From Monocercomonoides exilis PA203 (taxonomy: Eukaryota > Protista > Preaxostyla), in assembly GCA_001643675.2 (NCBI GenBank), contig LSRY02000001.1:868001-932000 (forward strand): a stretch of DNA of 64,000 nt, in the 5' to 3' direction. Positions within the stretch are counted from its first letter, which is position 1. Each line of letters starts with the position of its first letter. Under the pieces are notes generated by a model. It was not told where the DNA came from. It made no database searches and saw only the letters and a program-made list of their open reading frames with translations. Positions 7,480 through 61,789 of the stretch are shown in pieces. Position numbers and translations under genes: made by a program.

Positions 7480-9530
7480 CAAATATCTTTTAACAGTTCA
7501 AGTATTCCTGCTGACTAATAATCGCGAAGCGTTCATTTTCCTCTTCCTCAGCTGGTATTTTAACATTTCTTCTTCTTCTTCTAATTCCAATAGTGTAATT
7601 GAAATTTCTTTCGAAGAATCACAGTATGCAGTGTCCTTGGATCCCAAAATTTCACCTGTGCATCTGTAATAAGACAAACAAAGAACAAAGTTCGATACAA
7701 AGTTATGTTTATGGAAAACAGTCACGGAACAGTCACGCATGATAAACAGCAGAACGAATAAAGTTGATTCAACGTATAATCAACTTTTTGATTTGATCAA
7801 AAAAGAAGCATCTACCTGTTGAATGACCAAAGTGACATCAAATCGAGTTCAAGAAACTCTTTTGCAGGAGAAGAGAGTTTCAACAAAACTAAAATAGTAA
7901 ACATATAACCAAAAAGGTTCATTGAGATCAACAATATTAATAAAATACTGAACATTTTTCAAATATCAGACAAAAAGAAGATAAAAGCAATCTTTTTTCT
8001 TCCGTCTTCGGAAGAGAAAAATGTTAACTAAATGAGAAAAAGATAGTGGAATTGAAGAAGATGGAGCAGCTTTCGAATACTGTATTCAACATGAACCATT
8101 CATTTGTGTGTTTCATCATTACCAGTTCAGATTCAATTTTTATAATCTTCTCCTTTCCCAAATTGACAAATCCCAGCAATTACATCCTTCTTCATCTCTG
8201 TAGAACTTTTTTGAACAAGCAAATCCGTTCATTCTCGAATACATTACAGAAACGGATCAATAGAATTAGCCAACTCTTCCTACGACTCTATACAAATTTG
8301 ATCTGCGCAGATCATATCAGAACAGGCTCGGTAACTTCCCTGTTCCATATTGAACTTTGCACTCATTGAATTCTTTTCAAGAACTACATAGCGGAATTGA
8401 TGGAGATCATCTGAAAGGCTTTGGAGAAATACATGTATGATGCTGAAGCTTCTGCTTCAAAAAGGCTGAAACGAACGAGCTGAGTGTGCAACAGAGTTGT
8501 TGTTTTTCCTCTTTCTGCAGGTTCATTGTGATATAATCTTGACACAGATGAAACAGACACCGAAGTTGATTTGCATAGATAACATTGCGGTGCTGATTAC
8601 AGCGATGTTTGTCAGAGAGGCATTGATGGCCTGAAGGTTGTGCTGATATTGCCAAACATGCAATGATGGACACAGAGAATCATGCGCATTTTGTTTGAAG
8701 AACAGGGTGGTGCTAATGAAATGGTACATGAATTGCCCTGCACTACCAGAAAGATGAGTACCGCACTGCGATGATTGAGCGACTAAGTTTATTTTGTTTT
8801 GAGCACATTTCGGTTCAGTCATATGTATCAACGATGTGTGCAGCTGAAAGAAATGGAAAAGAATTGATTGTGGTTGTTAAAGGTTCACTGATGCTGTTCT
8901 TCATATCCGTTGCACGGATGCTGGTAAAGAACTGAGAGAAGATTATATAGGTGATGGGAATTGCGCTGAATGCAGGCAAGAAATTGAGTGAAAAAGAAGA
9001 GCAGGAAAGAATGAAAAGAGAGCATGTATTGCTCAAACAGAATTATTCTGAAAACGAAGCATACAAGAAAACAACAATGAATAAGAAGCGCCGAAAAAAT
9101 GAAAAAGAGATAAGATAAAGGGAAAAGAAAGATGATGAGATGAATAAAAATTCAGTTCAAAATAAAAATGAAATTATGCAAAATACATTAAATTCATAGA
9201 AACGTGTTGATTGAAATGCATCGTACAGTTACACATATGCATAATGATCAAAAGTTTTCAAAATTCAGTCTGTTATACCAAGTTCCGTTTGGCAAACATC
9301 TCTATTCTTTGATGTTAAGGAGTAACATACTTCAATGAGAAAGCAAGTTTCCTCGTTTGAAGCTGCTGAAACAGAATCCAGGCAAAAGAACATCTTCCTG
9401 ATTGAGTCAAATAGGCATGAATTGCAAATCCTTCGTGCTTTGCTTCCACTGAAACAATCGATTCTGTTTGAAAAATACAATGTTGTTCATATCTTCGAGC
9501 AGGATTTTTTGTTTTGATTTTTGTACAAAA
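7480..9530 (-). pseudogene. Degenerate coding-like region, probably of the Cys/Ser-rich surface-protein family
   Basis: Higher-complexity sequence broken into short minus-strand ORFs (7498-7740, 8407-8673, 8523-8831, 8815-9036, 9265-9480). Confidence 0.3.
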
Positions 9531-10543
9531 AATATAGATACATTTATTCGAGCATCTTATATGTGCAGCTTTTATCTCCGCAGACTGTCACATAGATGTA
9601 GAAGTTGATTGAAACGAAAATGACTCCATAGATAGCTGATGAAGTGTGAAATATTATGGGGGATTATGAAGTGGCAAATGATGAACGGTGGAGCAGGAAA
9701 GCGCTTTTGAAGTTGAACAGAAAGCAGGAGCAGTTAAAAATACTTAGGAGGAAAAAGAAGAAGTGGAAGAAAGACGGATATTGCAGATGTGGAGGAGGAT
9801 GAAGCAGTGAAAGAAGAGTTGGTTCAAAATGTGGATATTGAAGATGGAAATTGGATGGTGGATACATCAAAAGCGGTAGAAGAAAAAAAAATTTTTTTTT
9901 TGAATAATTAATTTTATAAAAAAAAGGTATTTTGTCAAATTGTTTCAACACGAAATCTGCTTTGATGTTTATTTTTTTTAATTTGTTATCAAATCTTTAT
10001 TTTTTCTAAAATTAAGATACAATTCATTTTTATGCTTTCAAAAACAAAAGGAGCTAACTTTTCATGTCAGATAGGCGAAGTGAATGAAAATCATAAATAA
10101 ACAAGCATAACTGCATTGTCAAATTCTCAATCAGAAATATGTGAAGAAGAAACGATGGCATAAACAAAAATTGATAGCAAAAATGATTGATACTTCGAAA
10201 TAGATTTCAAATGAAAACACAGGCAAACAAAGCATAGAACAACTTTCTGAATAAAATGTTGAAAATTTTTTTATTCACCAATGGATTTTAATAACCACAT
10301 TCCATTAACTTTTCAGTCCCTTCTCCAAGCATCATCCCTATTTATCATATCACATCTTTCTCAATTACTCTTTTCTTTTGGTTCATCAATGATTCCTGCG
10401 ACTTTCATAACAAACATTCCTTCTACTTATCCTTTTCATCTTAATACGATGATTATTGTAGAAGTGATGAACATCTGCCATTCCCATTCACCAATTAATT
10501 ATCAGAATTCGAAGCTTCAATCAACAAAATGTCAAATATGAAT

Positions 10544-10620
10544 CATCATCATCATCATCATCATCATCAGAAGAAGAAGAAGAAGAAGAAGAAGAAGAAG
10601 AAGAAGAAGGAGAAGAAGAG

Positions 10621-10652
<32 letters not shown>

Positions 10653-10683
10653 AGAAGAAGAAGAAGAAGAAGAAGAAGAAGAG
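10544..10683. repeat. (CAT)n-(GAA)n compound microsatellite
   Basis: Directly visible tandem trinucleotide repeats. Confidence 0.95.
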
Positions 10684-11961
10684 TTTGAGTGAAGTGCAAT
10701 GCAGTTCACTATGCATTCTTCGAACAATTCAATGAAGATATAAAGATAAGCTTGACAATTGAGAGGATTGTCCATTTTGTTTAGCAAATGAAGTGCACCA
10801 CCAGAAACCCAGAATTGGATCTGAGCTGCCATCTTCACTCCTCCTATCAAGGAGTCAAAATGGATTTCATAAATAACAAATTAAATGAATCAGATTGAAT
10901 GATATATTATCCAGTACTAAAACAAACCTTTATCAAAAAAACGATTTTCTCATTAATTATTTATCGTTGGTTTTGAAGAAACAAAAGAACTATTTATTTG
11001 TTTTTGCCATTTGTTTAAAATAAATAATTCAAAATTGAAAAACACAATCAATTATATAACATACATGTTTGATCTGAATTAAATGCTAAAAATAAATTCA
11101 TTTTTGATACACGTTCTGTCATCAACAAAATTAATAATAATATTTGTTATTGCTAGTTATTAACTATTATCATTAAAATAAAATGTATCAACAAATGTAC
11201 ATTCAAATTATAAATTGGTAACATGAAAAATCATTAATCACAAGCGATCGTTTCGATCAAAATATGAATATTTGATGAATGAATTATTTCCCTTTAAATT
11301 TTATTTTCATGAAAGCTATTTTGGTTTGAGGAAAATAACAAAAATGAAGAAATGTGATTCGTTTGTGATAAATATATAAATGGCACTTTATCGTTTTTGG
11401 ATGAATTATTATTTATTTGATAAAAAACTATTACGGGAAGATCTCTGATTTCAAAAAAAGAAAGTGCTGAATTTGAAATTATTCTTGTGAAAAATTTTTT
11501 AATGAAAGAAGTTAAAACTATTCAGATTTAATTTTTATGCATGAAAGATATATTCTCAAACCGAAATTTGAAAAAGAGAAAATTAGGTTTCAAAAATAAT
11601 CACCCATATGTCTTTATTTTTTTGTAATGTTTTTTTTAATTAATTTTCAAATAAAAAAAACATATTTCGATCAAATTTCTTCCCACTCACCTAATTTTTC
11701 TTAAACATCTGCATCACCTTAAAAAAGGTGGGATCTCGTCAGTCTGTGCCCGGTACTTTTTTTTCCTTTAATAAAAACAAATTATTTTTTTTAAAAAATG
11801 CCTTGGAAAGGATAAAACACTTTCCAATAATTCAAAATTTTCAAAATAAAAATTTTATCACAATTAACAATCAATAAACTTTAATTATATATTTGTCTAT
11901 TTAAATATTATTTTTCACTTTGACAGAAGTCATATCATTATACGAAAATTTACATCAATAT

Positions 11962-12218
11962 GGGTGATAATTTTTGACATCATATTTTTATCTTTCAATA
12001 TTTTCGGTTCGAAAATTTGACTTCAATATCAACAAAAGAACAGTGAAAATTGGAAATGTCTGAAAAAAACATCTTCATCTTTATTTGAGTGAAAACATTT
12101 TTTTTTGACAGCGGTTGTGATAATTTTTTAATTTGAAAACAAAATCTCTTCCCAATGACAAATAAGCTTTGAAAAATTAACACACCGAAAAAAGTTATGA
12201 TATAAATAATTATCACCC
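11962..12218. mobile_element. MITE module D, 257 bp, ~25-bp TIRs, ATAT TSD
   Basis: ATAT|GGGTGATAATTTTTGACATCATA ... TATGATATAAATAATTATCACCC|ATAT. A full-length inverted homolog lies at 59812-60066. Confidence 0.85.
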
Positions 12219-12389
12219 ATATTACTTCATCCAATTATTCATCTTCTGCAAATACATTTCAAATACTTCTGAAAAATTCTTCTCTTCTTCTTCTTCCAAC
12301 AAAATTTTTGCATTTCTTTCATTTTTCTATTCTTCTCCTTCTCCTTCTCCTTCTTCATCTTCTTCTTTTTCTTTCACCTCCAGCATTTG

Positions 12390-15300
12390 AAAAATGTTGC
12401 ATGAAGTTTATCAAAAGAAATAGAAGAGTTGACAGCTGGGCCATCGAGGATTGAGCAATGTGCATCGGCTGCTCAACAAAGACTGCTATCGAGGAAGCAA
12501 CAGCAACATGTTTGCGTCAAATTAATCTTCTTTCTTTATTTCTTTTCTAACTCTTCCACGTCATATTTATTTTCTCCTTTTACATTTCTCTTTCTTTATA
12601 TATATATATCTTTTTTTTCTTTCTCTCTCTTTTCTTTATATGATTCCCATTTCTTTGTATTTGTGTCAATTCAGAACAAAGTGTATGCTAGTTTGTTTAT
12701 TCAAATCAGTTTCAATGCATAACACTTTTCTTTATAATTATTTGTTGATTTCTCTTCTCTAATATAATATTTTCTTTTATTATTTCATTTCTCTTCTCAA
12801 TCTACTCTTCTCTCTTCTTCTCTTCTCTTCCCTATCTTTTTCATCTCCTTTTCCTTTCACTTTTCCTTTTCCTCTTCCTCTCCTCTTTCTCCTTCTCCTT
12901 CTCCTTCTCCTCATCCGCAACTACACCCAGCGAATTCCCACTGCTCTTCGCTTTCTCCGCCTCTCTAACTCCACCTCTGCCCTGTTTCTGGTGTGAATTA
13001 CGTTCCTCCTCCGCCTCCTCTTCCTCAGCGTGAATTTTGTTCCTTCCGCGCCTTAACTGACAGACCATGGGCAGAGGAAAGAGGAGAGAGGGATAGGGAA
13101 AGGGAAGAAGTAGAAAGAAGAAGAGGAGGAGGAGGAGGAGAAGTGGAGGAGTTGAGTTTGGGAATGGAGATTTAGATAGAAATATATGTTTTGATGAAGA
13201 AAGAAGAGGAGAAGGATATGATGATGATGAGGAAGAGGAAAAAGAGGAAGATGAAGAAGAAAATGAAGATGATTTTATTTTGCTAAGTGAAATGGAAAAC
13301 AGAGAAAATTTCAGATTCATAAAAGAAGCAGAAGAAAAAGAAGATGGAGAAGAAGATGAAGAAGACAAATCTGCCTTAAAGCGGAAGAATAAGAATCTGA
13401 GACATTCTGTTGCTTTCAATATAACTGTTCATGAATCACCGTTTGTTTTAAATACTTTGCATTTGAAATTTTTGTTTCATTTTTCTTCTTTTTATTTGTC
13501 TCTCATCGATATCATCGTCATTTCTTTTCACTTTTTTTCATCTTTATTTATTTATTTATTGTTTTTATTATTATTATTGTAATAATTATTATTTTCATAT
13601 TCACCTTTCATTATTATTATTATTGACATCCAATATCTATTTCAGAACCTCCAAACATAACCAGAAGGAGAAGAGCTAGAAGCAGAAAGATGGTAGTGTG
13701 ACTGTGTCCAGCTAAAAGGGGCTGTTTGAAGTGGCAAAAAAGGCCAAAGTTTATTTCGCCTTTTCTTTCTCATCCTCAACAGAAGAAGGAAGAGAAGAAC
13801 GAGAAAGAGGAAAGGAAAGTGAAAGGGGAAGAGGAATAGGAAGAGAAGAATTATTAATCTTATTTCAAAGACCCAAACGAATCGTTGAAGAAGCTGAAGG
13901 AAAAGGATGCGAAAAGAAGAGTGTGTATGAGTGAAAATCCAGATGAGGGGGAGGAAGATGAAGATGATGATGATGATGAAGGAGAAGGAGAAGGAGAAGA
14001 AAGAGATGAAAGAGAGAAAAGGAAGGAAAGAGGAGAAATAAGCAGAAGTTATATAAAATTTACGAGAGAAAAGAAGATAAAGGAAAATAAAGAAATATAA
14101 GGAAATTCCAGCAGAAAAAAAAACATAAGATAAAATTTTAATTACTTTATCACACAAAGAGGAAACGAATGAAAATGCAGGAAAACAAATGAAAGTGGAT
14201 AGAATGGAAAGAGATTCATAAAGTTCGCCTCTTCTTTCTTCTTTTCTTTCTCCTTCTCTTTCTCCTTCTCTTTCTCCTTCTCTTTCTCATTTATTTTCTT
14301 CTTCTTCTCCTGCTCCTCCTCCTCCTCCTATTTTCTTCTTCTTCCTCTTCTTCTTCTTCTTCTTCAGAACAGAGTGCTGCTTCGCCTTCACTTTCAATTT
14401 TATCTTCTTCTTTATACTCTTCCACATCTTCATCTTCATCAACATTCACTTTTTATTCTTCTTCCCCTTCACTCACCTCAGACAACTCTCCTTCTTCCAC
14501 CTCACCTTCTGCCTCACCTTCAGCCTCTTCTCCTTCTCCTTCTTCTCCTATTCCATTGCAAACACCTCAATCACCTCAGTCATCTCAACCTATTCAATCT
14601 ATTCAATCATTTCATTCATAGCAATCATATCAATCATATCAATCGCCGCATAACCCTCACTCTTCCATTGCAAAAGCTGACTCCACAAGCAGTTTGCTGC
14701 TGAGAAGCAAAGAAACCGTTCAAAAACACTCCTCAAAGGAAACAAATAGAATGCTTCCTTTCTCTTGCAATCAGCTCCATTCATCCACATCATTCGCTTC
14801 TAATCAATCAATGTTCTTTTCTTCACCTTCAGCCGTGCCTGCAAAGTCATTCCATGGAAGAACGAAGAGCGTTGTGATTAATTTTGGTCCTTCTGTTTCT
14901 TCTTCTGCTGCTTCTTCTTCTTCACAATCTTCACATCCTTCTCAGCATTCCCAGACCCAATAAAGCACATACCAGCCTTCCTCTTTCAAGTCCTCCCTCC
15001 ACTTTGATGAACTGCAATCACATTCAACATCCTCTTTCCTTCGCTCTATCAACAATTATTCATCTTCATCCTCTTCTTCTTCATCCTCATCCTCATTTAA
15101 AAGTCGTTCACAATTCCGTGAAAGCCTTATGTTCTGCAGTCATCGCGTGCTCCAGCTGCCTCGTTTTGTTTGCGTCTGCTGTCAGACGAGGTGGAAGTGC
15201 TGAGAGGAGTGACATCGCTCCTCCGGTCGATGAAGGCTGCTCTTTCTTCGCTTTCTCTGCTTGGCGAAGACAGCAACAGTAACAGCAGCAGCAATGGAAG

Positions 15301-19400: not shown

Positions 19401-19478
19401 CAAAAGAATTTGTTGATAAATTGGGTTTCAGAGAAAAAAACAGAGAGAAATGATTATTCGTAATCAAATCACATATAT

Positions 19479-19700
19479 GGGTGTTTTTTTTGATATCATA
19501 AAAAAAGATCAAAAAAATAAAAAAATAAAATCCATTGCGGTTTTTATTGATTAAAGAGTTTTTTTTCAGATTTATCACAAGTATTTAGCTTAAATTCCTG
19601 TTGCATATATTTGTTTTATTGTTATATACAAAATAACAAACCTTTTTTGCAAATATTGAGAAAAAGATTTTTTGATTAAGTTTCAAAAAATAATTGAAAA
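19479..19700. mobile_element. MITE-like module B
   Basis: ATAT|GGGTGTTTTTTTTGATATCATAAAAAAAGATCAAAAA... About 220 bp aligns by eye in inverted orientation with 59600-59807. Confidence 0.7.
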
Positions 19701-21169
19701 TCAATCTTTAAAAGGAAAATAGATATTTCAAGATATACTAAACAGTACTAATAAATAAAAATTAACACAGATAGATATTAAAATATGTAATTAGTTTATT
19801 TTAAAGATGATGCAATGGTTTTAATATTTATTGATCTAAAACATCATCGCCAAATTCCTGTTATAGCTGCGCAGTTCAACGACTTTAAAAAACGATGAAC
19901 GAAATGGAGGGGAAACAGCAATTGACGAACGAAATATGATCTTATTCGTCTTTTCTCAACAAATTCTTTATTTGAATTGATTTACCAACTTTCCTCCCCA
20001 TCCGCCGTCTATTTTTCTTCTGTTCTGCTCTGCTTCATCAAAATTCACCATCTGATAATGTTGCACATGTTGTCTTCTTTTATCTCCAACACTTTTCTCT
20101 CCATTCATCTCATGACATTCTTTAATAGCTTCATTCACGAAAAAATAACTTATAAAGCTTTTTCTGTGAATCCATTTTGTTCAATTTTTTTCTTTTTTCT
20201 TATTACAGCCAGCTCCCTCTTCTTCAACCACGTCTTCATCACCAGTTTCATCTTTAGCAACCTCCGTATATTCCACCTCATCTCCCTCACAAACACCTTC
20301 TACCTCAACTCCTTCAACAACTCCAGCTGTTCCATGAGCATCATCATCTTGACACACAGTTGTTAGCAAAGTTCCGTAGGCCACATGTTTTCCTTGACTT
20401 AAAGATCAGCCAGTTCCGTGTGGTTGAAGAGGTGAACGAAGTTAGATAAAAAGGAAGAAGAAGAAGATTCAATTTCATTGCAAATGTCTGAAAATCTCCT
20501 TCAAAATCTTATGTGCCACATCTTTTTCGCTTTCTTCTTTCTTCTTCATTTCTTCCTCGAAACTTTCATCTTTTCCTCTTTCTCCTTCTTTTCCTTCTCC
20601 TTCTCCTTCTCCATCTTTGTCTTTCTTCTTCTTCTTTCTCAATTCTTCTATCTCCTTTTTTTCTTTCTCCTTCATCCTCCTCACCTCCTCCTCCACTTCT
20701 TCTTCCCATTCCAACTCCTCAGCTGAATTTACACTGTTCCATATGTTTCCATCGCTTGAGAACGGAGATATTTCCCACCTGGTAGATCTTTCGGTTACAA
20801 ATGTGGATGTTGTGTTTGAGTCACCGGTAAAGTTGTTGTCTGATATGAAAGCCTACCTCACAAAGCTTCTTGTGGCGGGAGCAGTGCAGCAATCTTCTCT
20901 TCATTCAGCACATTCAATTTTCTTTGTCTGCCTAACTTTGTTTGTGGGGTGAAGAAGCGAAGAGAAGAAGGCGGCAGGAGATGATCAGTCATCTTCATCC
21001 TCTGTGCCTGCAGTTGACCCTTTGATTGCCTCGGATGTGGTTGGGTCATTCACATAAGTGGCAGCAATGGAAGAGATCGAGAGGCGTCTGCGGATTGTGG
21101 AGCCAGAGGCGGCTGGGGTGTATGAAAATCGCAAGAAGTCGTAACTGAGGGATATGATGTAGCGTGACA

Positions 21170-21600
21170 TAGCTGGTTGCATTGTGTGGATGTGTTGTGT
21201 GTGCATACGATGTGGCGCTTTCGGAGATGCTTTCGGTTTCACTGGCGGGGCAGCTTCCGTCGCTTGCAGCGTCGGTGAGCACGAAGTCTGGGAGCAAGCG
21301 GATCTCTGAGCAAATATTTGTGAATGCGTTCCCGTTGATCTACGATCTGTTTGACCCGTCGCTGCTGCCATCGGAGATCACCGCAGTCGAGGCATGTGGT
21401 GGTGAAGCTGTGCGACAAAGTGATGGGGTGAGGGGTTGAAGTGTGTGAAGTCGGGGAGATTGTGGAGAAGTGGCTGTCGGCGGCGGGGCTGAGGATGGAG
21501 GATGTAGTTCTGTCGCCAACAGCGATTGCGCTGGCGATACTTGAGGAGCAAGAAGAGGCAGAAGATGAGAAGGAAATAAAAGATGATGAGGAAGAAGTGG
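21170..21600. repeat. Dispersed GC-richer gene-family fragment, inverted homolog of 63540-64000
   Basis: Shared colinear blocks such as gatgctttc, cttccgtc, gaagtc.gg.agcaag, gtgaatg.gttccc, cccgtcgctgct, gatcac.gc.gtcgagg and gcgattg.gctgg. Confidence 0.7.
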
Positions 21601-22189
21601 AAGACAAAAAGAAGAAAACGAAGATGATGTATAGGCAAATGTGAATGTTGAAAGAAAATCGCGTTTGGATGATATATTGTTGATCCTTTCGTCGATTTCT
21701 GATTTCGGACAGAAAATCAAAAAAAAGAGTGGTCAGAATCGTGATATATTTATTTTTTGTTTCTGCTTCCTTCATCTTCTCTTTTGCTCCTCTTTCTTTC
21801 TGAGCCTTTCTAATGTCTTTGTCAAATCCATCTTCTTCTTTCTCTTCCTCCTCCTCCTCTTCTTCTTCTTTCTCATTATCGATGCATTTATCTTTCAGAC
21901 ACGACGATCCCTTTTCATCTTTATCACTAACAAACTCTTTTGCACTCCTCTTCTCATCTTTCTCCTCCTCCTTCTCTTCCTTCCTCTCCTTCTCACCACC
22001 CATCAAAATCCACTAACTAGCCACATACGCTGTTCAGTTCAGTGTCATCCTCTTCCGCTCAAACACATCCCTCACTGTTCACTCGCTCCTGATTGCAACA
22101 CACCTGCATTGCGCAATCTGCTCTTCTCAAGAATAATACAAGGGATAAGCAGTTAGAAAGAAGAAATAGAAGAATAAAGAGGGGAAGAA

Positions 22190-24960
22190 AACATGTTCAT
22201 AAAGAGGCAGAGCTTGGGCTTGATCTGTCAAGGGACTTTTGAGTGTGTGAAGAGGAATCTGTGGCAAGAGACGATGGAGTTAGTGGCTTTGGAGGAGCTC
22301 CAACAAGAATGGAAGGTGCAGGCAATTGTGTGTGTGGCAAGGGAGAAAAAACCGGACAATTTAGTAGGAGGCTGTGGTGCTTTGAGTGTGCAGCGGGCAG
22401 ATGAGAGTGTGAAGTTGAATAACCAAAATGTCTGATGCTGTTCACTTCTCAATCCCTCCTCTTCCTTTCTGATGCTGCCTGTGCAAGCCTTGTGTCGAAT
22501 GCATCAATTTGTGATGTGGAATACTCTCTATCTCATTTGTCTTCCACTTTTCTTAGGTTCTTCCCGTGATTCCCTTTCCTCTGCTCTTCGCTCAACTTGC
22601 TTTTGAATATCTCTTTTTTAGCCTATTCCATATGAACTGCAATTTTCGCTCTTCGCTCCTTGGAGGTATTATAAAGTGAATGGATTATTGCGATGTGCTG
22701 TCAGCTTTTGTGAATTTCTCATCCACTCATTTCAGTTCTTCTGAACAGCCTGCTCACGAATGTCGTTCGAAACGATAAAGTAGAGTGGGAAGTGTCGTTG
22801 CAGAAGAGAAGAGAGGTTCAAATTCACATCCAGCAAAACTGTCAAATGCATTGACAGTGATGATGATGTTGTTGAATGCAGCCTAACCAAATGAAATAGT
22901 TTTTTGCGTGAATTTTTTAGCCATTGATTGAAAATCTTACACACATTCGAATGTTGCTGATCTGATCCAATATGAAGTGAGAGGAAACATCAAAGAAGAA
23001 GAAGAAGGTGAAGAATGTGAAGAGGAAGAGAACAAAGAGGAAGAGAATGTAGTCTTCTCAAGAGACAGTTCAGGAAATGCATCAGAATGCAACGATGGCT
23101 GAGCTTCTCTTTTCAAATTGTGTTGAGTTCTTGCATGACTTCTCTCTCTGCCTGCACAGCTGCCTGTATGCATTCCATTCCTCTCGCAAAAACTGCCTTT
23201 TCTGGCGTATGCACAGCTATATGTATTTTTGAAGACATGTTTTATACTGTCACGCTCTATTCTGATCTCTCTCTCATTTGCAGCAACATTTGGCCAGATG
23301 AAAACAGGTTGCAAATGCTGCTGCTTGCACCATTCACTTTTACTTCCAATGCTCAATGATGTTGAGGCTGCTGCATCATCAGAAAAATGAGAATAATCAC
23401 AAGTCAACGAAGAAGAAGAAGAAACAACCTGTTAATTGTGAGATGCACCATAAAAATGTGTCGCATCAGAGGAAGAGGAAGATAACATTAATAATTCTTC
23501 TTCGCTTTCACTTTCTCTCTCCTACCTCTTTCTCTCCCCCTTTTTCATCTTATCTCCATCTTTATTTCCAACGCTTCTGTCTCTTCGATCTGTGAAACCC
23601 ACTCCTCACACAGCTACCTGCTTTCCACATGACACTTCGGTGAAGCCACTGCTGCCACTTCGTTCAAAAATGTCACCCAAACAGACAATGCAATACGATC
23701 ACATTTGCACTCCACTCCTTCAGCAGCTGCAATCGCACGCTCCACCTGCCTTGCTGTCTTCTGCTTCGTTACAACAATCTCTGGTGGGAAACTTTCCTCC
23801 TCATCTTCTTCTTCTTCAATTCCCCAAAATCCCCTTCTTATCTCTCTTTCTTTCAGAGCAAAGAATGACAGATTTCAAGGAGTGTCATTTCACCTGTTTT
23901 TTTTTCATACGAAAGCCTGAAAGCATTGATACGAAAGGCAGAGAAGAGAGTTGATACTCAATGCAGCGCTGAGCGAATCAACAGTTGAGGAGCCACCAAG
24001 AGGTGCCTGGAAGGATGATTCCGCCTCCTTATTTGAACGAGGCAATATTGAGTGCACTGGAGTTGGAGCAGATGAGGTTGCAGCTGGCGGTGAGGGAAAA
24101 TACACAAATGGAAAAGATATTGCTGGTGAGCTGGAAGCTGTTGGCATGCACACTCCAACAGAGCTTGTTGAGCGAGATGGCAGTGAAGATGAAATGCATC
24201 ATGCTGAAGAAGCTTATTGACTAATATAAAACAGAAAGTTGAAAATTACACTCTGAAACCTCCAATGACGAGATCCGTGGCGATGAGATGCTCAACAAAG
24301 TTGCTGATGTCATCTCCGAGCAGGAACACAGGCGAGGAGGCACTGAGGGAGGAGAGGTTGGCGTGGATGCTGAAAAGTGATGAAGGGGAGGAGGTTGACA
24401 TCGAGGTCGGGGTCTGTGGGAAGAGTGGGAGGCGATAGAGGGTGTGAAGAAGGGAAGGGGAAGCGGAGGTTGAGAATGAAGAGGGTGAGGTGAGGGCCGG
24501 CTGTGGCTTGCACGAATCCGCTGAGCTCGTTGAAGGTGCTGAGGTTTGCGCTGTGCATTTTCCAGTTGAAATGGGCTGCGTCTGCCACTACCAACACCAC
24601 CTACTCGGGGACAAACTGCCAGGCGGTATCTGCATCCCACAAGAACACCCAGCTGCTAAATCCATGGGCCTGTGCCTGGTCTCGCAGCCTCCTCTAGCCT
24701 AGCTGTGATCTTTACACATCCCCCGCCTCCGCTCCCCTTCTCCCCACCCACAACCATCCACCCGCTGCACTCCACCACGCTGCTGCTCCCAGTGCACTTG
24801 ATCTGTGAAAACATTGTGCTCGCAACTTCGCCCAGTGTTTCGAACTCGTACAGCACCTACCTCCAAGAGCTAATTGTTATCAGCCCGAAAAACATCCTCT
24901 CCGCCTTCGGAAGTCACCGTTGCATCCTCAATCAAAATTGAAACTGAACCAACCAGGGCT
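22190..24960. pseudogene. Mosaic of degenerate coding fragments
   Basis: GC-richer sequence with many short overlapping ORFs, a minus-strand intron-like segment near 24222-24250, and no intact frame. Confidence 0.3.
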
Positions 24961-25049
24961 GTTGAAGAATTCTAAGAAACTTTGTCACATATCTGTCTTG
25001 CTTTTAAAGTGATTTTGGAAGAGTAAGAAATAGCGCAGAATAACATAGG

Positions 25050-26051
25050 GTCAACTTTTTAATGGGACTTTTTTCTTTATTGGCACTTTTTTTGTTTTTG
25101 CATGCCAATCATTCAAAAAAGCTTGATGGACCTCAACATTTGGATGAGTGTGTTTATAACACAAATACATTAAATTACCGGTTTGTTTTTTAAATTTTGT
25201 TTATTTTTCGTAGAGATACAGCAATTTTTAATTTATTTTGAAGTGACTTTTTTCAGCCGAAGAAGCGTTTCACAAATTTTTGAAATATATTTTTAAAAAC
25301 TACTAGCATTATCCTTTTTATATTCAAAATCTTGAGTTTAACAACTTGTTTTTTCATCATTTTTTCACATTTCAATTTTTTATCAACATGCTAACACAAA
25401 TATGAAAATTTCTTTGTTATTAAAATGATGTGTTAAAAACAAAAATATGATATGAAAAATGCACACTCTAATAAAGAAGTGTGAAAAAGATTGAACATTA
25501 AATTTTACTATTTGCTTCAAACACATCAAAATTGAATAAGTTTGATCTCAGATCTTTTAATGTTGTGACCATTCACCTGTTTGAAGCAAATAGAAAATTT
25601 TAATGTTCTATCTTTTTCACACTTCTTTAGTAGAGTGTGTAATTTTCATATCATATTTTTATTTTTAACACTTCATTTTAATAACAAAGAAATTTTCAAA
25701 TTTGTGTTAGCATGTTGATAAAAAATTGAAATGTGAAAAAATGATGAAAAAACAAGTTGTTAAACTCAAGATTTTGAATATAAAAAGGATAATGCTAGTA
25801 GTTTTTAAAAATATATTTCAAAAATTTGTGAAACGCTTCTTCGGCTGAAAAAAGTCACTTCAAAATAAATTAAAAATTGCTGTATCTCTACGAAAAATAA
25901 ACAAAATTTAAAAAACAAACCGGTAATTTAATGTATTTGTGTTATAAACACACTCATCCAAATGTTGAGGTCCATCAAGCTTTTTTGAATGATTGGCATG
26001 CAAAAACAAAAAAAGTGCCAATAAAGAAAAAAGTCCCATTAAAAAGTTGAC
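25050..26051. repeat. 1-kb foldback palindrome: 474-bp arms, 54-bp spacer
   Basis: 25050-25523 is the reverse complement of 25578-26051. The outer 352 bp are identical; I count 9 mismatches in the inner 122 bp. Confidence 0.97.
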
Positions 26052-26364
26052 TTTATTCAAAAAAAAGTCGAATGGAATGTTCGCCAAGCAACTGATTCAA
26101 TGCCAAAAAGAAGAGCAGAGGATGAGAAAGATGAGGTCATGATAGTTTTGGGCTTTTAAAGTGAAAAAAGTGAAAATTTGTAAATTTCTTTTCATTTATA
26201 AAATAATTTTCTTTTTAATTTTTTAACGTTGTTTGATCAATCTATAAAAATAATTTCTATTTAGTATTATTTTCTTTTATGCAAAAATTCAAAGCAAACA
26301 GTTGTTTATCTGATGAATATCTTGTTATGCTATCATATTTTTCATCTGTGGTTTTGATAATTGT

Positions 26365-26749
26365 TCATTTTCAACAAATGTTTTAAGATCTTCAACAGCA
26401 AATTTTGAATTTCTTACCAATAACATCATAAAACAAATTTTTTACAAGAAATTGATAAATTACGTATTGTTATAATAGTTTTCATGTTTTACAAACCAGC
26501 GAACTTTTGTTTTTTTCTGTTAATCAAATTTTCGAAATTTTTTGAAAAGTTTTTTTAAGTTTTTTTCAAAATTTGTAATAAAAACAATTAAAATAAATTT
26601 AAAATCAATAAATAATAAATAATAATAATATATTTAACAATATTTTCGAATTATTATTTTGAAAAATTTACTTTTCAACCCCACCCTTAATGAAAATTTT
26701 TTATGATTAAACGTCAGAAAATATTTTGTGACATCAAAAAAAATCACCC
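26365..26749. mobile_element. MITE-like module A (~390 bp)
   Basis: Ends TGACATCAAAAAAAATCACCC|ATAT. A colinear inverted homolog lies at 54619-55000 (shared acgtc, ttatgat, accctt, cgaaaatattgtt, catgaaaac, ttgaagatc, tttgttgaaaa). Confidence 0.75.
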
Positions 26750-28036
26750 ATATGATGAAAAATCAAAGAGTAATCCTTCCGACCAGCTCCTCCACAAGCA
26801 ACATCATCTTTTTCACACGTACACTTAAAAAGTCTGTGCATATCCTTTTTTGCAATCCTGTCTTTATCCAAAGGAGTGAATGCAATTATAATTTTGTGAT
26901 TAACAATATCAAGAGAAGATTTGGGAATAATTAATTCTTCCTGCATAGGATGATAATAACCTATGTTAAAATTATATATTTGTTCCAAATAAATTTTTAG
27001 AATAATCGATAAAATTCAAACAATTTATGTACTCATCGGATTCTTTTTTTTAGTTTAATCCTCTCGCATCTGTGTGATTAGAACATTTTCTCGGTTTCTT
27101 TTTTCATCTCGAACTTTTTTGATCAAGAAGAATAAAAAAGTGTTATTGAAAATACAAAAATTAAAAATAAAAATAAAAATAATAACTGTTTACAAATCTT
27201 AACAGGGTTTTTTTTATGAAGAAAAAAACATTTGTGAGGCATCCATGAATAACAAATTAAGAAATTTTGCTAAATGCCTTATTGACATGTATTACGTCAA
27301 TGACCGGCAGTGACATGAGTGCCGTGGTATTTACACCATTAAAAAAAGATCACGACATATCCCATTGTTCATTAACTAATCGAAAATAACCAATTGAAAA
27401 TTATTAATAAAAAATAAAATAAATTCCAATGAAATAAAAAATAAATTGTGAATAAAATTCAATAATTGACTGTATTTTCTTTTTTGATGAAAAAAATATT
27501 TTTTTTTAATGATCGAAAAAATTTTTTTTTTATCCGGTCACGTCACGTCACTCCAAAAATGTTCACGTCAGAAGGCATGTGACGCAGATGTTTAATTTTT
27601 CTGTAAAAATACAGAACCTTAACGATGTTGTTGTTTCTATTCATTAGGCCTCTGCGACACGCATTTTTTGAGTGCAATTTGTCGGTCGAGAAATAATTCA
27701 TTTGTCGAAAAAATTGAAAAGATTGTTTTTTCCCTAATATTGCAATTCATGAATATATCTAACTTACCTCAACATCACTGCTTTTCTATTTTTTTTTTCT
27801 TTTTTTTAACCATTATAATAATATATTTTGTGTTTTGAAAACAAATGAGAAAATTGTGAAAAAACTGGAGAAGATATATGAAAGGAATCAAAAAGATTGT
27901 TGTTTTGTATTAAATACAATGATTTGGAATGGAAGTTTTTTAGATATCTTTGCTGCCGATGTAGATTTGATTAATAGTGATAGTTTCAACATTGTTAATT
28001 TAAATGCTCGAAGTAAAATAACTCATTCATAAGAAT

Positions 28037-53740: not shown

Positions 53741-54557
53741 CTGTGAAAATAAGTATTTTCAATTTCATTGAAATTAATAACAAATGCAAAAGGTTCGACG
53801 ATGTAATTCAAGGATTAATTTCATTGTATAGAGATTAATAAACCATGTGTTTAAAACCTGTGTTTTCTCCTCATTAAAATGCATTTTTATTCGTTTTCAA
53901 AATATTCAACTGTTTATAATTTAAAATGGGACGGTTATAAAAAAGATAATAAAAAATTCCTTCATCTTTTATTGATAATTTCTTGATAAATCCAAACAAT
54001 TCAAAAATTGTATTCATGAAGTGTTGACGAAAAATTATTCGCAATATCTTTATTATCATCAATAAGCATCAGTGCAATTAATTATTCGAATTTAATGAGT
54101 AATTTTCTTCAGAAATTATTGTTCAATTATTTTTTAATAAAATATATATTTGCGTCAAATTGGTAATTGGTTGATTGGTGAAAAGTGAAGAAAATACTGT
54201 ATTCAGTCAATATTTGTGAAAATGAAGTAAATTTGAACCTCCAAATTTATTTTTTGTCAATAAACATAAAATTTTTTGATTTTTCGAAATAAATCTTCAT
54301 CCTTGAAATAGGATAATTTTCAAGTGAATTCATCTCTTATTGTGAGATTATACATTTTTCAATCAAAAAAAATTATTCGCATTGAAAATAATTCTGATGA
54401 ACAGTCTTAAACAATAAAAGAATTCTGAAAGTGTGTTTATTGATTAATTCTTATGTGAAAAATATTTGAATTCAGCTTCTTGAAATGAGACAAATGTCTA
54501 AATTTTTTTGATAACTTCCTTTTGTAAAAATTTCCAAAAAAAATAATATTTTCATAT

Positions 54558-55000
54558 GGGTGATTTTTTTTGATAACTTTCTTTTGTTTAATTTTCAAAT
54601 AAAATAAATATATCATATGGGTGATTTTTTTTGATATCATAAAAGATTCCGACGTTTGATCATAAAATTTTTTCCTAAAGGGTCAGGTTGATAAGAAATA
54701 TTTTTTTAAAATAGTACGAAAATATTGTTTCATATATTTTTGTTATTAATTATTTGTTGATACAAATTTGTTTTCAGTTGTTTTTGTAACTTATTTTGAA
54801 AAAAGTGAAAAAAATTATTCGAAAATATCGAAACTGAAAAAAACAGAACAAAAAAATGTTCTCTTGTATTATAAACATGAAAACAATAAAAACAATATGC
54901 TATTAATTAATTTTCAGTACAAAAATAGTTTAATGATGTTGTTGCAAAGAAATTTAGAAATTGAAATTGAAGATCAAAAAACTTTTGTTGAAAACAAATA
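54558..55000. mobile_element. Truncated module C end (54558-54614) followed by module A (54619-55000)
   Basis: Two ATAT|GGGTGATTTTTTTTGATA starts 61 bp apart. The first continues like the reverse complement of 230-276; the second like the reverse complement of 26365-26749. Confidence 0.75.
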
Positions 55001-56419
55001 AATTTCAACAGTTTCAGCACCCTGTTCCCTTCCTCATGTTCAAAATTCATTTTTCTTCCACGAACACATTGATTTCTCGCTATTCTGCAAAAAAAATTTT
55101 TTTTTCCCTTTCTTTTCAAATCTAATCAGATTCGTAAGAAAATGTCAACTCAAATTTCCTTCCCAATCGCTTCATCATGCACACTTTTCATATGAATTCG
55201 CTCTCCCAACTCGATGGTCACCATGCACAACGAGATATAAAGCTTTCATTCATTTTCATTCATTTCCATTTCGCGCCCTGAAAACAACACAAAATCATCA
55301 ACAGGCAAATATTCATATTCAAATATATAAATAAAGACCAAACTGCCTTTCGATTGTATTTTGCCAAGCACACTCATTTCCACAGCTATCTTCATTCAAA
55401 ATAAATCAATCTCTTCATTTCAGTCTCAGAATGGTTGAATACAGCATGGAATGCATCTCCACAAAATACATTGTATATCTCACTGGAAGATCTTCTCAGC
55501 CCGTACACATTGTGGTGGATGTCCAGAGGGGTTTTTTCTGTTTCTGTCATGATCATCTCCTTTAATATTATTCTCAACCACCCAAATCAATATTTGATGT
55601 CTATCTCATCAACACATAGCACATGAAGGATATGGAGCAGAGAAGAGATGGAAGAGGATTATTTGTAACAGGGGGTGGGAGTTGAGTGGTTTTTTGAATG
55701 TTAATATTTCGAGAGGGGTTTTTGATTGATTGAAATTCTGAGACAAAGGGGTGGGGAAGAGTGGGTGGAGATTTGGAGAAGATAATATAGTAAATATATA
55801 GAGAAGTGGTTGGAGATGGTGAGGAAAATATTTGAGACTAATTGGAGAAATGGATTTTGAAAAAAGGAAAAGAGGGCAAAAGCGGGAAGGAAGAGGAAAA
55901 TTGAGAAATGTTGAAAGGCTTGAAAGAAGTGTATTTTTAATGAGAGAAGAAAGGAAGTGAGAAGATATTTTGGAAGAGACTGTGAAAGGTGAAGAAAATG
56001 AATGGATTGATATTTTCTGAGAATATTGAGGGATGAACGGAAGAGGGGAATGGAAAGGAATGAAAATTGAGAGTTATATTCATTTTCGATTTTTGAGGGG
56101 AAAGGAGGGGGAAATGCGAAAAGAAAATCAAATGACTCTGAGAAAATCTATCTTCATTGACTATTAACGGAACATCGACCAAAAATTTCGCTACAAGGAA
56201 GATTTGCTCCTTCTTAATTGAGCACAAAGTGATAATATTTTTGCCTATCAACAACATTTATATTACACATTACTTTATGAGTTTCATTTCGCAGCAATCG
56301 ATTTATCAACGCAAGATATATTCACCAACTTCAATCACTTCTTCTTTGATATTTCTTCTCACTTCATGCTGCATCACATTCAACTTTCAAATTCATATAT
56401 TCTGTTAAATCAGCAACTT

Positions 56420-58700
56420 GATTGCACACACAAATCGTTATTTCATTCAGTTTGCTTTTTTAACAGCAACATTATCTCTTCAAATGCCTTCTGTTGGATT
56501 TCTGGACGTGTATCAGAAATGTTTTCCTCTTCCGCAGAAACGCATTCCGCTCTGCTTTAGCACTCCGAACAGATTCCGTGTGATGACTGTGCTGAATGTG
56601 TGAATGGGTTTGAGAAGGGGATATGATCTATTTAGCGCATTACAATTATCTTCTCGGTTTATAACACTTCCAAGGAGCGAAGAGAGAGGATTGCATGCTC
56701 AAATGGAAGAGGAAAAGAAGGTGGATTTCAGAAACAAATTATGTGCGGATCAAATGAAACGGAGACAGCAGGAAGAGCCAAAGGCGAAGACGAAGACGAA
56801 GGGGAATGATGAGTTTTGCGCATAGTTAATTGTAGCTTTCGGTATAAGATTTGTTCAGTCTACAAAAGAAAAAGGGCGAAGGGGAAGAGAAATAAGCATC
56901 ATCAATGATTTTGCTTATTCTATTGCGCGCTCTCATCTGCTAAGCTGCATTCTCAAAGCAGCGCAGCCTCCTCAATATTTGCCACTCCTCATTTTTCCCT
57001 TTGCTTCATGCCCAATTATCTTCCACTTCTGTTCTGACTGGCACTTCCCCGAAGCCCATCACTTCTACGTCTTCCGCCACCGAATCCTTTTTCCTTACCC
57101 AGTTATCCATAGACATAATTAGCCCAAGCTCTATCTCTTTATTGAACATATCTTCTTCCCCTTCTCCTTCTTCTCCTCCTTCTCTTCCTTCTACCATTTC
57201 TTCCTTCTCGCTGGGTATCCCTCGAACGATTCTTGTGAAGTACAGCTGATCAATGCAAGTGTATTTACAAGCAGCAACATGAAAGCTACGGGGGATATAT
57301 TTGAGCCACAAAGCATCCTTCTGAACCACGCAACATGTACAGCAAGCGAGGGAATTCTGGTAGATATTGAGAAGGAAGAGAAAAAGGAAAAGAAGGATTT
57401 GGCAGATGCATTAAAAAGGCACAGAAAAAAGGTTACTCATAAAAGAAGAATATAGAAGCTGAAATGATGAAAAAGCATGTGAAGAGTCTCACCACACATC
57501 GCTTTGATTTTCTGCATGAAATCAAAAACCAATGATGGATTCAGCAGCATATTGTCGAACGTGATCACTTTCTCAACGTTTGCATCTGCATACAAATCAT
57601 CTTTATTCACTTCTTCTTCATTTCTCATTTCATCGCCATCATCACCATCACCTTCTTCTTCTTCTTCCTTTTCTCCTTCCCCAACCAACCTCCTATCCAT
57701 CACGCACAGCTTAGGGCGTTCGTTCAAAGTTAAGCAGCAGAATGTGATTAATCTATGTGTCAGTGTCCTTTGTATCGCTTTTCTGTCGATAGACGTTCAA
57801 CATTTGCTGGGCTGTGCGTTTCCTGTTGTGCAGTTAATGGTCTGCGGCTTCGACAACATCCACCAGCTGAGGTGACTAAACGCAATAACCCACATGGCGA
57901 ACCAGAATTGTATGGAAAATATGAATTTTTCAGAAAAATAAAATATATTTCATTAATTGTTTCATTTATTTTTGTGAATCTGTATTTTGCTTTTCAAATA
58001 TTTATCTTTATTTAAATTTTTTGTTCACCCTCAAATGATGAATAGTTATGATGGTGGAATAATATCTATGATTTTTCAATTGTCTTGCAAAGCAATAAAG
58101 ATTATTTCCTGAATGATGCTGTTGCAAAGCAATTGATCGGATTCATGAGGTTTGTCAGAAAATATTTATTGAGATTTTGTTCACAAGTTTTTCTTTCTTT
58201 CTTCTTTTTGATCAAATTCTTTTTCTTCTTCATTATTGCACCCACTTTTTCGCTCGTTCGTTTCATTATTCACAAATACACAAATATATTCACATTCAGT
58301 TTACGATGGTACCCTCTTGTCTCTTCTTCTCTTCGTGTGACCAACAAGTTCATCACCAACGTTGTCGAGTTCCACTTTGCATTTCTGCGCCACCGGATTC
58401 TCCAGCTCATCCACTGCCTGAAGAACGCATGCAGCTTCTCCACATCAGCAGAGGGCAGCGCAAAACAGCCACATCACAACATATTCCAGCGAGCACAGCA
58501 GAGCAGCCATATCTGAGTCACTGAGTGCGCTCCTCAATAACAAGAATGATTTTCTTCTATCAGAATTGTATTTGAAAGAGAGAGAAATCAATTCCTCAAC
58601 CATTTGCTCCTTCCCCTTCATTCCCTTCCTCTTCTTCTTCTTCCAAGCCGCAACATATTCCACAATCTCAACTCTTGTTCATATACAGCGCTCACAGAAC
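56420..58700 (-). pseudogene. Degenerate intron-containing gene of unknown function
   Basis: Protein-like minus-strand ORFs 58445-58663, 57437-57727 and 57006-57329, interrupted by stops and AT-rich introns. Confidence 0.3.
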
Positions 58701-59599
58701 AGAAAATTGAACAGAACTTGTCAAAAAAAAGGAGGAGTCGATGAAGCGCTGCCAAACGAATCTGAGAACGAACATGGGTGAGAGCAGCAGAAAGGGAAGG
58801 GAAAAGATAAAGTGTTCAGAACGTGTCAAACTCCATAAGGGAGGGAAGAACAGGGCATGCAATTGTTTAATTGCTTCTGATGCCGAGAGCCGAAGAAAGA
58901 GAAAGAGAAGATAGAAGGTTTGGAAGAAGAGCGGAAGGCCATCAATTTTGATCATCAAAGCGAGTAGCTTGTTTAGTGAAAGATATCGTTGCCATAGGGA
59001 GAGATGATAGCGATGATGGAGAGAGAGTGAAATGAGGAGGAAGCAAAAACGAAAGAAAAGAATGATCAAGAGAAAGAGGAAGATGATGAAAGAGGGAAAG
59101 AAATTACATGAACAAAAAACAAATGAGGGTAGAGGGGAATTCTATGATAATTTCGACACATGAGCTGCTAGAGCAAGAATTTTGGAAAAGTTCTCTGCAA
59201 ACTAAAGGAGTATTTTTAAATATGGAATGGAAATAAAGGAAACGATATTTTGTATTGAGAAATGAGCTTTAACTGAATTTGCATAAAGAATAAAAAGAGA
59301 AGTTTCGAGATTGAGTCAATTATTTTTATAAACTGCAGTTTCCTGAATAACACAATCTTCGTTTGCTGAATCTGTTGAGCTGATCAGCAAATTCGGAAAT
59401 TATTTGATGAGGTTGAAATAAGATTAATGGAAAGCACATTGCTTTTTCAACGGATAAATAAAAATTCACATATTTATTGCACTTTTTAAAGTTCTTTAAA
59501 AATTTTTCCCCCCTTTTATTAACTTTGTTTTACAGGTTAAGAATTGTTTATTTCTTTTTGATGTGTTTTGTTGGTAAAACTTTATTTGTTTTTGGATCA

Positions 59600-60300
59600 T
59601 TTTTATTTAACTTGATCAAAGAATTCTCTTTCATAAAAAAAAAACGTATGTCTTTTTTGGAGGAAAAAGTCAAACAAATATATATTACAGAAATAAAAGC
59701 TAACTTCCTGATTAAAAATTATTCAAACTCTTTGATCAATTAATACCACTATAGATTTTATTTTTTCGATTTTTGATCTTTTTTTATGATTTCTAAAAAA
59801 ATCACCCATATGGGTGATTATTTTTGAAATCATAACTGTTTTCGTGGTGATAATTTTTCAGTTATTGTTTGTCTCTATGAAGAAATTTTCCATTCAAATT
59901 AATATTTTTTCATTATTGTTTAAAAATCAGCTTCTTAGGATCAAATAAAGATAAAGGTGTCTTGAATAAGCCGTTTCAATTATCAGTGTTTTTTAATTGA
60001 TATTCAAAAGAAATTTTCGAGTCGAAAATTTTGATAGAAAAAATATGTTATCAAAAACAATCACACATATGGGATAAAATTTTTGCAACTATGAAAAAAA
60101 CTGAGATTTGTTCCAAACTTTTTCGACAATCTTTTCATAAAAAATCAACCGAAACAACACAAATAATTCCTGAAAAATTCAAAAATTGAGAGAAATATTT
60201 GTTTGAGTTGAATAAAACAAAATTCATAAAGCAAACAATATTATCCCATATGTGTGATTTTTAATGAGATCATAAAATCGTTGTATCGTTGATCTTTCAT
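59600..60300. mobile_element. Tandem array of at least four MITE-like modules joined by single shared ATAT
   Basis: Module B ...ATCACCC|ATAT(59808)|GGGTGAT module D ...ATCACAC|ATAT(60067)|GGGATAA module E ...TTATCCC|ATAT(60248)|GTGTGAT... Confidence 0.85.
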
Positions 60301-61789
60301 GAGTAATTTTTTTGTTGTTTTATAATTTTCATCTAAAAAAATATTTGTTAATCTGAAGAGGGATCCTTTTTGAATTAAATAACATGCAATCGATCGAATG
60401 TTTTTCAATAAAAGATTTATTGGAAAAAATGTTATGGCTAATTTGATTGTTCAGTTATCTTTTTTCCATGAAAGTTTATAGACCGGATAAGAAAAGGGAT
60501 AATGAACATTCTATGTGGGATAAAAGATATTATTTTCCTCAGAAACAAGGTCAGTGACGATTGGGAATTGATGATGGAATTTGACAAAGATGATTTTTGT
60601 GAAAAGCATCTTTGAAGGAAATTCATTTTCCAAAATAACAAATGAAAAAATTAATGGATGCATTTTTCTTTAGTTCTCATTTTTAACGAGGATGTTTCCA
60701 TCTGTGGATTTCTCAGAGCTCAAGAATCTGATAAATTATATAAATTGCCATTTGTTTGTTTTTCTGAGGAGAACATCAGAAGAGGCTGGATGACGAGAGA
60801 CAACCATCAGACGTGAATTGCATATTTTTTTGTATTCAATTGGTACAGGGGAAGAAAATGAATAAAATTGAAAAGCATTTGCATGAAAGCGAAAAGGAAT
60901 GAAAACAATTGGGCAGCATTTGGAAAGAAAATAATTCGAGATATTTTTTTACTGAAAAAAATTGTAGACAACATCTTAAGCAGGACATTAATGTTTGAAT
61001 AAAGGATTATGGAAAATTGAGCCTGAGAAATAATGGAAAAGGAGATTGACAGCTACTGTGATAAAGCAATCTTCTGCTTTTGCGATAGGGAGGGTGTATG
61101 TGTTCTTTTGAGGAATTTTTATAATAAATGCTTTTCTTATTTTTATTCTAAATTTTGTATCTTTTTTCTCATTCCAAATAACAGTTTTTATTTCTTCGAG
61201 TGTCATTCGCAGGGACTATCCATTTCAAGCAACATTTTACGAATTATGTGGTTTCTTCTCAGTCTTCTCCTTCTTCTCATTCTTCGCTATCTTGGCAATA
61301 GTCTGCTTCACATGCATTGAATGTCGAGAATTAGCCTCATTTTGAACATCAAAGCAGCGGTGCTTCTGTTCCAACGCAACAAGAAGAAAACAGACAAATT
61401 CCTCTATTATCATCTTCTTCCTCATCTTCCTCATCTTGTTCTTCTTCTTCTCTCAAAAATGCATATTGTTCTATTATGCATATAAAAAAATCCACATGTT
61501 TTCAAGATTAGTGAAATGTTTGTTCATTTCAAGAAATTCTTTAAAAGAAAACGTGGGCAATAAGTTAAAGATGATTTAAATGAAACAAGAAGAAAAAGAA
61601 AAAGGTTTCGAAGAAGAAGACAACGCGGATGATGATTTGGGCTGCGAAATCGAAGGATCGATCACACACAATGCACACTCAAAGGATAGCAGCATGTTGT
61701 TGATCGTTAGCTCTTTCTCGCTCGGGACCTGCTTGTGCTGTGCTGAAGAAGAAACAGCAGCAGAAGATAAAGGCAAGTCATCGCCTCCT

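Follow-up and report, generated by a model that had tools for sequence, protein, structure and literature searches.

Sola2-type transposons joined end to end at single ATAT targets in the oxymonad Monocercomonoides exilis

Introduction

How different transposable units come to stand end to end with only one ATAT in each junction is the question raised by positions 59600-60300 of a 64,000-nucleotide stretch of the Monocercomonoides exilis PA203 genome (contig LSRY02000001.1, positions 868,001 to 932,000), which is called the window throughout. A preliminary description made from the letters of the sequence had interpreted this array as the product of a self-targeting, site-specific MITE system, probably driven by a Sola transposase, which inserts into the target-site duplications of earlier copies and builds integron-like arrays. 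It had suggested scanning the genome for terminus-to-terminus junctions and comparing the use of terminus-adjacent ATAT with that of random ATAT, and it had named a fixed module order or junctions at chance level as findings that would speak against the proposal. Approximately 35% of the M. exilis assembly have been reported as unclassified repeats (PMC8767320).

Organization of the array and its surroundings

Reading the sequence of the region, we recognized three junctions in which two element ends flank one ATAT (59808-59811, 60067-60070 and 60247-60250), in agreement with the earlier view of different units following each other with a single ATAT per junction. The first of them, ATCACCC-ATAT-GGGTGAT at 59801-59818, lies within a 52-bp palindrome (59784-59835) with 26-nt arms that are 92% complementary, which matches the imperfect palindrome of about 50 bp described before. 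The second and third read AATCACAC-ATAT-GGGATAA (60059-60077) and TTATCCC-ATAT-GTGTGATT (60240-60258), and excising 60071-60250 restores AATCACAC-ATAT-GTGTGATT, so that the palindrome is indeed rebuilt by removing unit E, as had been claimed. A genome search with 59560-60340 as query resolved the stretch into independent repeats, and the region is laid out as follows:

54558-54614, forward strand: 57-bp remnant opening with a GGGTGAT terminus, same end family as 270-276, preceded by ATAT at 54554-54557
54615-54618, no strand: ATAT, left target-site duplication of the 5.2-kb element
54619-59807, forward strand: 5.2-kb non-autonomous Sola2-type element with both 26-bp terminal repeats and no transposase
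59808-59811, no strand: ATAT common to D (left end) and the 5.2-kb element (right end), forming the core of the 52-bp palindrome
59812-60066, forward strand: D, 255-bp miniature element
60067-60070, no strand: ATAT common to D and E
60071-60246, forward strand: E, 176-bp miniature element with GGGATAA termini
60247-60250, no strand: ATAT common to E and F
60251-60312, forward strand: F, diverged left-type terminus (GTGTGATT... ATCATAAAA ... TTGATC)

The size of D is as described before, whereas E measures 176 bp instead of 177 bp. What had been regarded as a small module "B" (59600-59807) represents the last ~230 bp of the 5.2-kb element at 54619-59807. The copies of B match leftward to 58408 and then continue among themselves past that point, and the 5.2-kb element shows an internal deletion of ~650 bp at about 58408-58420 relative to 6.1-kb copies. 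Complete non-autonomous copies have a size of ~6.1 kb, carry GGGTGATTTTTTTTGATATCATAAAA at both ends and are flanked by duplications matching on both sides, namely ATAT (L031), AATT (L032), ATGT (L036) and ATGT (L038). More than 30 open frames, taken from the 5-6-kb copies and their flanks, were scanned against Pfam without any transposase being detected. A serine-rich low-complexity frame is kept in the 5-6-kb elements (L045:532-3453 on the reverse strand; about 57546-57908 in the window); it is open over 973 aa in one copy, shows no family match and has at least 118 matching places in the genome. As a candidate for the enzyme of these copies it was ruled out, being low-complexity sequence. 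An unrelated transposon family is represented in the same repeat island as one Sola2-type element by a frame of 425 aa with a DDE_1 (pogo/Tigger-type) domain (5e-13; L038:866-2143, reverse strand), ~1.7 kb upstream of that element.

The 57-bp remnant is located immediately outside the left end of the 5.2-kb element. Such short direct duplicates of a terminus plus ATAT were observed just outside full elements at 54554-54618, L031:3792-3817 and C6:994424/994448, with spacings of 57, 22 and 24 bp, and are possibly remnants of elements that were nearly all deleted after insertion in the duplication. A further observation concerns the old palindrome between D and F, both arms of which (60059-60066 and 60251-60258) carry a mirror-image change from CCC to CAC on D and from GGG to GTG on F. 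The palindrome could have templated a correction, or F may simply have a variant terminus of its own.

All termini listed in the preliminary description (276, 11605, 11962, 12218, 19479, 26749, 54558, 54619, 59807, 60066 and 60247) were found to be present. Apart from the region listed above, they belong to the following features of the window:

270-276, forward strand: right-type terminus TTCACCC followed by ATAT; end family also found at 54558
11599-11605, forward strand: right-type terminus ATCACCC followed by ATAT; unassigned short element with a degenerate other end
11962-12218, reverse strand: solitary miniature element of the D family with ATAT on both sides and no terminus adjoining
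19479-26749, reverse strand: second large non-autonomous copy, 7.3 kb, more diverged, with ATAT at 19475-19478 and 26750-26753

Allowing up to one mismatch, ATCACNCATAT occurs 23 times in the window, compared to 4.3 occurrences expected from shuffled sequences, and ATAT directly follows all exact ATCACCC termini of the window with an A/T-rich terminal repeat upstream. The second large copy is older than that at 54619-59807, and identical 46-base stretches are present in inverted orientation at 25162 and 25939 within it. A degenerate terminus-like arm (19453-19474, ...AAATCACAT, then ATAT) faces its end at 19479 and forms another, older end-to-end junction.

Target-site specificity

At other loci, 28 of the 29 right-end flanks of the large element conform to ANNT, 13 of them being ATAT. 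Exact termini of the form ANNT-GGGTGATT were counted 2277 times in the genome, compared to 82 times for the control. Among the first 100 termini listed, the tetramer was ATAT in 54 cases and AAAT or ATTT in 29, and many pairs of termini at a distance of 235-300 bp exhibited matching non-palindromic duplications (AAAT, AAGT, AATT). This shows that the target-site duplications are 4 bp long and follow the pattern ANNT, ATAT being strongly preferred. Judging from how often each tetramer occurs in 324 kb of sequence, the use of ATAT exceeds that of the average position 68-fold, and the duplicated target averages a 40-fold preference. There is also a mild preference for C at position -5 just outside of the duplication, which is found in 23% of the termini.

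Miniature elements D and E and relic F

The left terminal repeat of D is identical to that of the autonomous element (see below) at 22 of 26 positions. Its right end shows CAC in place of CCC, while other D copies end in CCC. The D copies are 67-88% alike and have solitary relatives with duplications of their own, e.g., that at 11962-12218 of the window. At least 40 full-length copies of E occur elsewhere as solitary elements with 83-89% identity and their own ANNT duplications, and the tetramers preceding exact left ends of E are ATAT, AATT, ATTT, ATCT or AAAT. Only 18 of 27 positions in the terminal repeat of E agree with the autonomous repeat, suggesting that the mobilizing enzyme may be that of another (sister) Sola2 lineage. 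D and E are MITEs, i.e., short, non-coding, multi-copy units with ANNT duplications, although the partner of E may differ. The modules recur with other neighbors elsewhere in the genome, as had been noted before, and the miniature units carry no genes. The assignment to a MITE system applies insofar as the units represent copies of transposons bounded by terminal inverted repeats and do not form one fixed composite, but does not extend to B, which is not a miniature element. In our own alignment, F resembles the left end of the large element at ~65%, and searching the available sequence for its right end or further copies yielded only low-complexity matches. F is probably a truncated relic.

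Autonomous elements and their putative Sola2 transposase

Autonomous copies of ~19 kb carry the 26-bp inverted repeats GGGTGATTTTTTTTGATATCATAAAA and encode a protein of 1035 aa. A complete copy of 19.1 kb (C12:264881-284003) has a B-type and a left-type end, is flanked by ATTT on both sides and contains the transposase gene (L048:7627 to L049:806) with an interrupted frame. An intact frame is found in the copies on C80 (1035 aa; L041:1080-4187, corresponding to C80:599679-602786) and C44, as assigned by their right ends, and that on C80 is located 11-14 kb from a right end. Relatives on C15, C44 and C80 have the right 4 kb in common and continue for more than 20 kb. The interval C7:1458077/1470851, which shows AATT at both ends, was rejected as an autonomous copy of 12.8 kb, because only its left 3 kb are family-like and no transposase is present. 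When comparing the copies on C15 (L035+L040) and C80 (L037+L041), we observed that an 8.5-kb transposase segment (oriented about 4489-12955) is present in opposite orientations. This segment is flanked by inverted repeats of ~520 bp, and the two copies are otherwise collinear and 94-97% identical, suggesting that recombination between these repeats has inverted the segment.

The 1035-aa protein contains a ubiquitin C-terminal hydrolase domain (PF00443, E 6e-12, aa 244-522) with Cys and His boxes, while its C-terminal region yielded no Pfam match; Sola2 has no Pfam model (PMC5751038). A word-based homology search of the protein retrieved only uncharacterized MONOS_ entries of M. exilis, and M. 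exilis has four near-identical proteins (92-96% identity), all annotated merely as uncharacterized. An exhaustive HMMER search with the C-terminal domain resulted in 666 homologues, and an alignment of 33 homologues revealed the invariant residues D66-C68-C71-H104, D132, D214, H218, H250-G-K and D256, corresponding to the motifs RTDxCxxC and HGKxxCD with two further invariant D residues. A relation to DUF7869/ISAzo13-like proteins, which came up in a feature search, was discarded, as Pfam confirmed it for only one of the 33 members at 6e-4. In a BLASTP comparison, the domain aligned with PPL_04538 of Heterostelium album (Polysphondylium pallidum PN500) with an E value of 2e-23 and 28% identity over 250 aa, spanning the CxxC motif and the acidic residues. 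PPL_04538 agrees with the Sola2_PPa-1 transposase of supplement 3 of PMC3627910 over the stretches compared by eye. The AT-rich 4-bp ANNT duplications and the predicted Sola2-homologous transposase in a 19-kb element with the same termini support an affiliation of the elements with Sola2, which narrows the earlier suggestion of a Sola-driven system to Sola2 specifically. The hydrolase domain was absent from the 32 other homologues scanned.

A second, diverged relic of a Sola2 transposase was observed in the window itself at 1629-3002 on the forward strand (tblastn, 32% identity and 8e-33 to aa 623-885). Within this relic, the second D and the motif EGHGKSEVD are retained in an open frame at 2094-3002, while the upstream part is broken.

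Origin of the array

We consider it likely that the region is a nest of one Sola2-type transposon group, which arose by ordinary reuse of the duplicated ATAT. Each insertion would leave a copy of the preferred target on both sides, flush with the terminal C of the element, and a later element with the same or a related transposase may then reuse that ATAT, leading to an end-ATAT-end structure with one ATAT. Later copies occupying the 4-bp duplications of earlier ones is also what the preliminary description had proposed, and this part of it is upheld. In the array, D and F would have come to lie end to end before the younger E entered their common ATAT, and the 5.2-kb element and D would have come to have the ATAT at 59808 in common. 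E appears as the youngest insertion, since it interrupts the D|F junction and its family is the least diverged (83-89% vs. 67-88% for D), while the sequence does not reveal which of D and F, or which of D and the 5.2-kb element, arrived first, because all duplications are ATAT. Insertions would gather in gene-poor AT-rich islands, making pile-ups likelier, and special recognition of resident termini would be needless. Among the observations that stand against such simple reuse, only 30 of the 50 junctions listed (up to two mismatches) contain ATAT, compared to ~90% predicted by a model based on tetramers only, and four elements in a row are expected only ~0.1 times in the genome according to a rough estimate. 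The shortfall of ATAT may stem from the decay of old duplications to ACAT or ATGT.

The self-targeting postulated before would mean that resident termini or the end-ATAT-end palindrome steer incoming elements to the adjoining duplication, creating arrays beyond target preference, which we regard as unlikely. Junctions of the form ATCACCC-ANNT-GGGTGAT with up to two mismatches, five of them exact, were indeed found at 64 sites in the genome scan and at none in the control. Exact facing termini 0-30 bp apart occur at 19 sites, of which five show a spacing of 4 and 14 are distributed over spacings 5-30. Compared to a uniform expectation of 0.015 pairs per spacing value, spacing 4 is overrepresented 342-fold, and terminus-adjacent ATAT is used 11-34 times more than random ATAT. 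The window adds three perfect junctions as well as two others, degenerate at 19475 and direct at 54615; non-ATAT junctions are more common than the tetramer-only model predicts, and a partner terminus accompanies ~3 of the 29 right ends of the large element, in loci chosen in a way that favors this. However, insertions at spacings 5-30 are also enriched 13-37-fold over the uniform expectation (the range depending on whether probable chance 7-mers are dropped or not), which argues for a regional and not a terminus-specific effect. Relative to the neighboring spacings, the spike at spacing 4 amounts to 9-26-fold, whereas the preference for ATAT alone predicts ~40-fold; the spike is therefore no larger than expected from plain target preference. 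The residual 11-34-fold excess matches the general clustering and is attributed to it, based on a small count of 14 pairs, some of which are chance 7-mers. Such clustering fits the report that repeats gather in regions of low coding density in the M. exilis chromosomes, which are 62.6% coding (PMC8767320). Moreover, only 32 of the 2277 exact termini (1.4%), representing 27 distinct sites, exhibit CCC just past the duplication, and exact left ends of E follow C-N-C in 2 of 36 cases, one being that of this window, which leaves 1 of 35 elsewhere and no clear preference of E for termini. On balance, and on the basis of small counts, the data lean against self-targeting. If true, it would parallel, in a eukaryote, the inverted-repeat targeting known of some bacterial insertion sequences, and heterologous arrays of related and unrelated miniatures would outgrow target preference and regional clustering.

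If the array were one long composite repeat or a segmental duplication, its module order would be fixed and the junctions copied as a block. The end of B joined via ATAT to D in the same orientation is indeed found again at C1:1326k (L012), at C6 (L003) D also neighbors large-element ends, and at L025 (C15) the right end of a large element is inside a D copy and not at its terminus. On the other hand, the flanks are unrelated at 26 of the 29 right ends of the large element, D and E are found alone with their own duplications, the D copy at C6 is inverted and separated by ATATAT, and no other locus shows the order B-D-E-F. This reading is largely refuted and very improbable. We also considered an assembly artefact, in which the long-read assembler would have fused different repeat copies at common terminal repeats. 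The k-mer depth of the terminal repeat around 59747-59900 is enormous, and no unique short-read contig among those listed bridges the transition from B to D (59807-59812), but short-read contigs span D|E (59821-60117) and E|F (60140-60276) with no differences, and the same 18-base junction is present in exact form at four other loci. The junction check used public read runs of one sample, yielding short contigs in which the terminal repeat is collapsed, and revealed no empty-site allele in this sample; an artefact nevertheless appears highly unlikely to us. Finally, the palindromic junctions and the heterologous units placed end to end resemble an integron-like cassette array with the palindromes as sites of a site-specific recombinase, yet this likeness is limited to the superficial picture. 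Inverted terminal repeats are present on each individual unit, and solitary sites show a 4-bp ANNT duplication that varies, as is characteristic of DDE-type integration. Cassette genes are missing from the units, and neither an integrase nor attC-type single-strand sites are involved. The enzyme would be a Sola2-type transposase instead of a tyrosine or serine recombinase. The integron-like character claimed before is hardly credible on these grounds.

Comparison with known systems and implications

The reuse of a duplicated target, as proposed here, relies on properties known from other transposons. The Sola superfamily was reportedly defined by Bao et al. in 2009. Sola2 elements of Dictyostelium fasciculatum (DFa-1/2/3) and Polysphondylium pallidum (PPa-1/4/5) have an AWWT target with ATAT, AAAT and ATTT duplications (PMC3627910). 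They correspond to the M. exilis elements in the AT-rich 4-bp target duplications, in forming families with common termini and different insides, and in a transposase with the motifs RTDxCxxC, DFKE(N), a second D and HGKxxCD. Their terminal inverted repeats are shorter (12-22 bp vs. 26 bp in M. exilis), as are their autonomous elements (10-15 kb vs. ~19 kb; PMC3627910). The M. exilis elements further differ by their oxymonad host (Metamonada), the hydrolase domain located N-terminally on the transposase, the great abundance of miniature derivatives, with 2277 exact termini, and in that no Fanzor gene was noticed in them.

Micron, a miniature element of rice, inserts in (TA)n microsatellites and exhibits a similarly strong preference for an AT-dinucleotide-repeat target that favors repeated hits, whereas the target in M. 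exilis is a single ANNT tetramer. Parallels are also represented by the transposon tandems of the P element, hobo, R1 and bacterial IS dimers, where an insertion keeps its target and further hits become possible, mostly at best-matching sites (McGurk and Barbash 2018, PMC5932611). These tandems likewise contain exactly one copy of the duplication per junction, their junctions favor preferred-target sites and the target is preserved; M. exilis corresponds to such multimers in the single ATAT at 59808, 60067 and 60247 and in the spike at spacing 4 across the genome. Differences are that the neighbors in M. exilis are of different families (the 5.2-kb element, two miniatures and a relic), that up to four elements are chained, and that every junction is palindromic, because the termini are inverted repeats. 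The array is a case of multiple insertion at a duplicated preferred target, i.e., of a known mechanism and not of a new one.

As far as the searched literature shows, this is the first characterized Sola2 family with miniature derivatives in an oxymonad. A high-copy group, which comprises autonomous copies of 19 kb, derivatives of 5-6 kb and at least 2277 exact termini, is hereby assigned to Sola2, and its ends and target rule help to annotate the genome of the amitochondriate model M. exilis. The predicted fusion of a hydrolase with a Sola2 transposase represents a testable oddity. In addition, TTCCCCC-ATAT-GGGTGAT junctions were observed at C1:2322500-2322776 and C8:12607, which indicate a further family with GGGGGAA termini that follows the same target rule.
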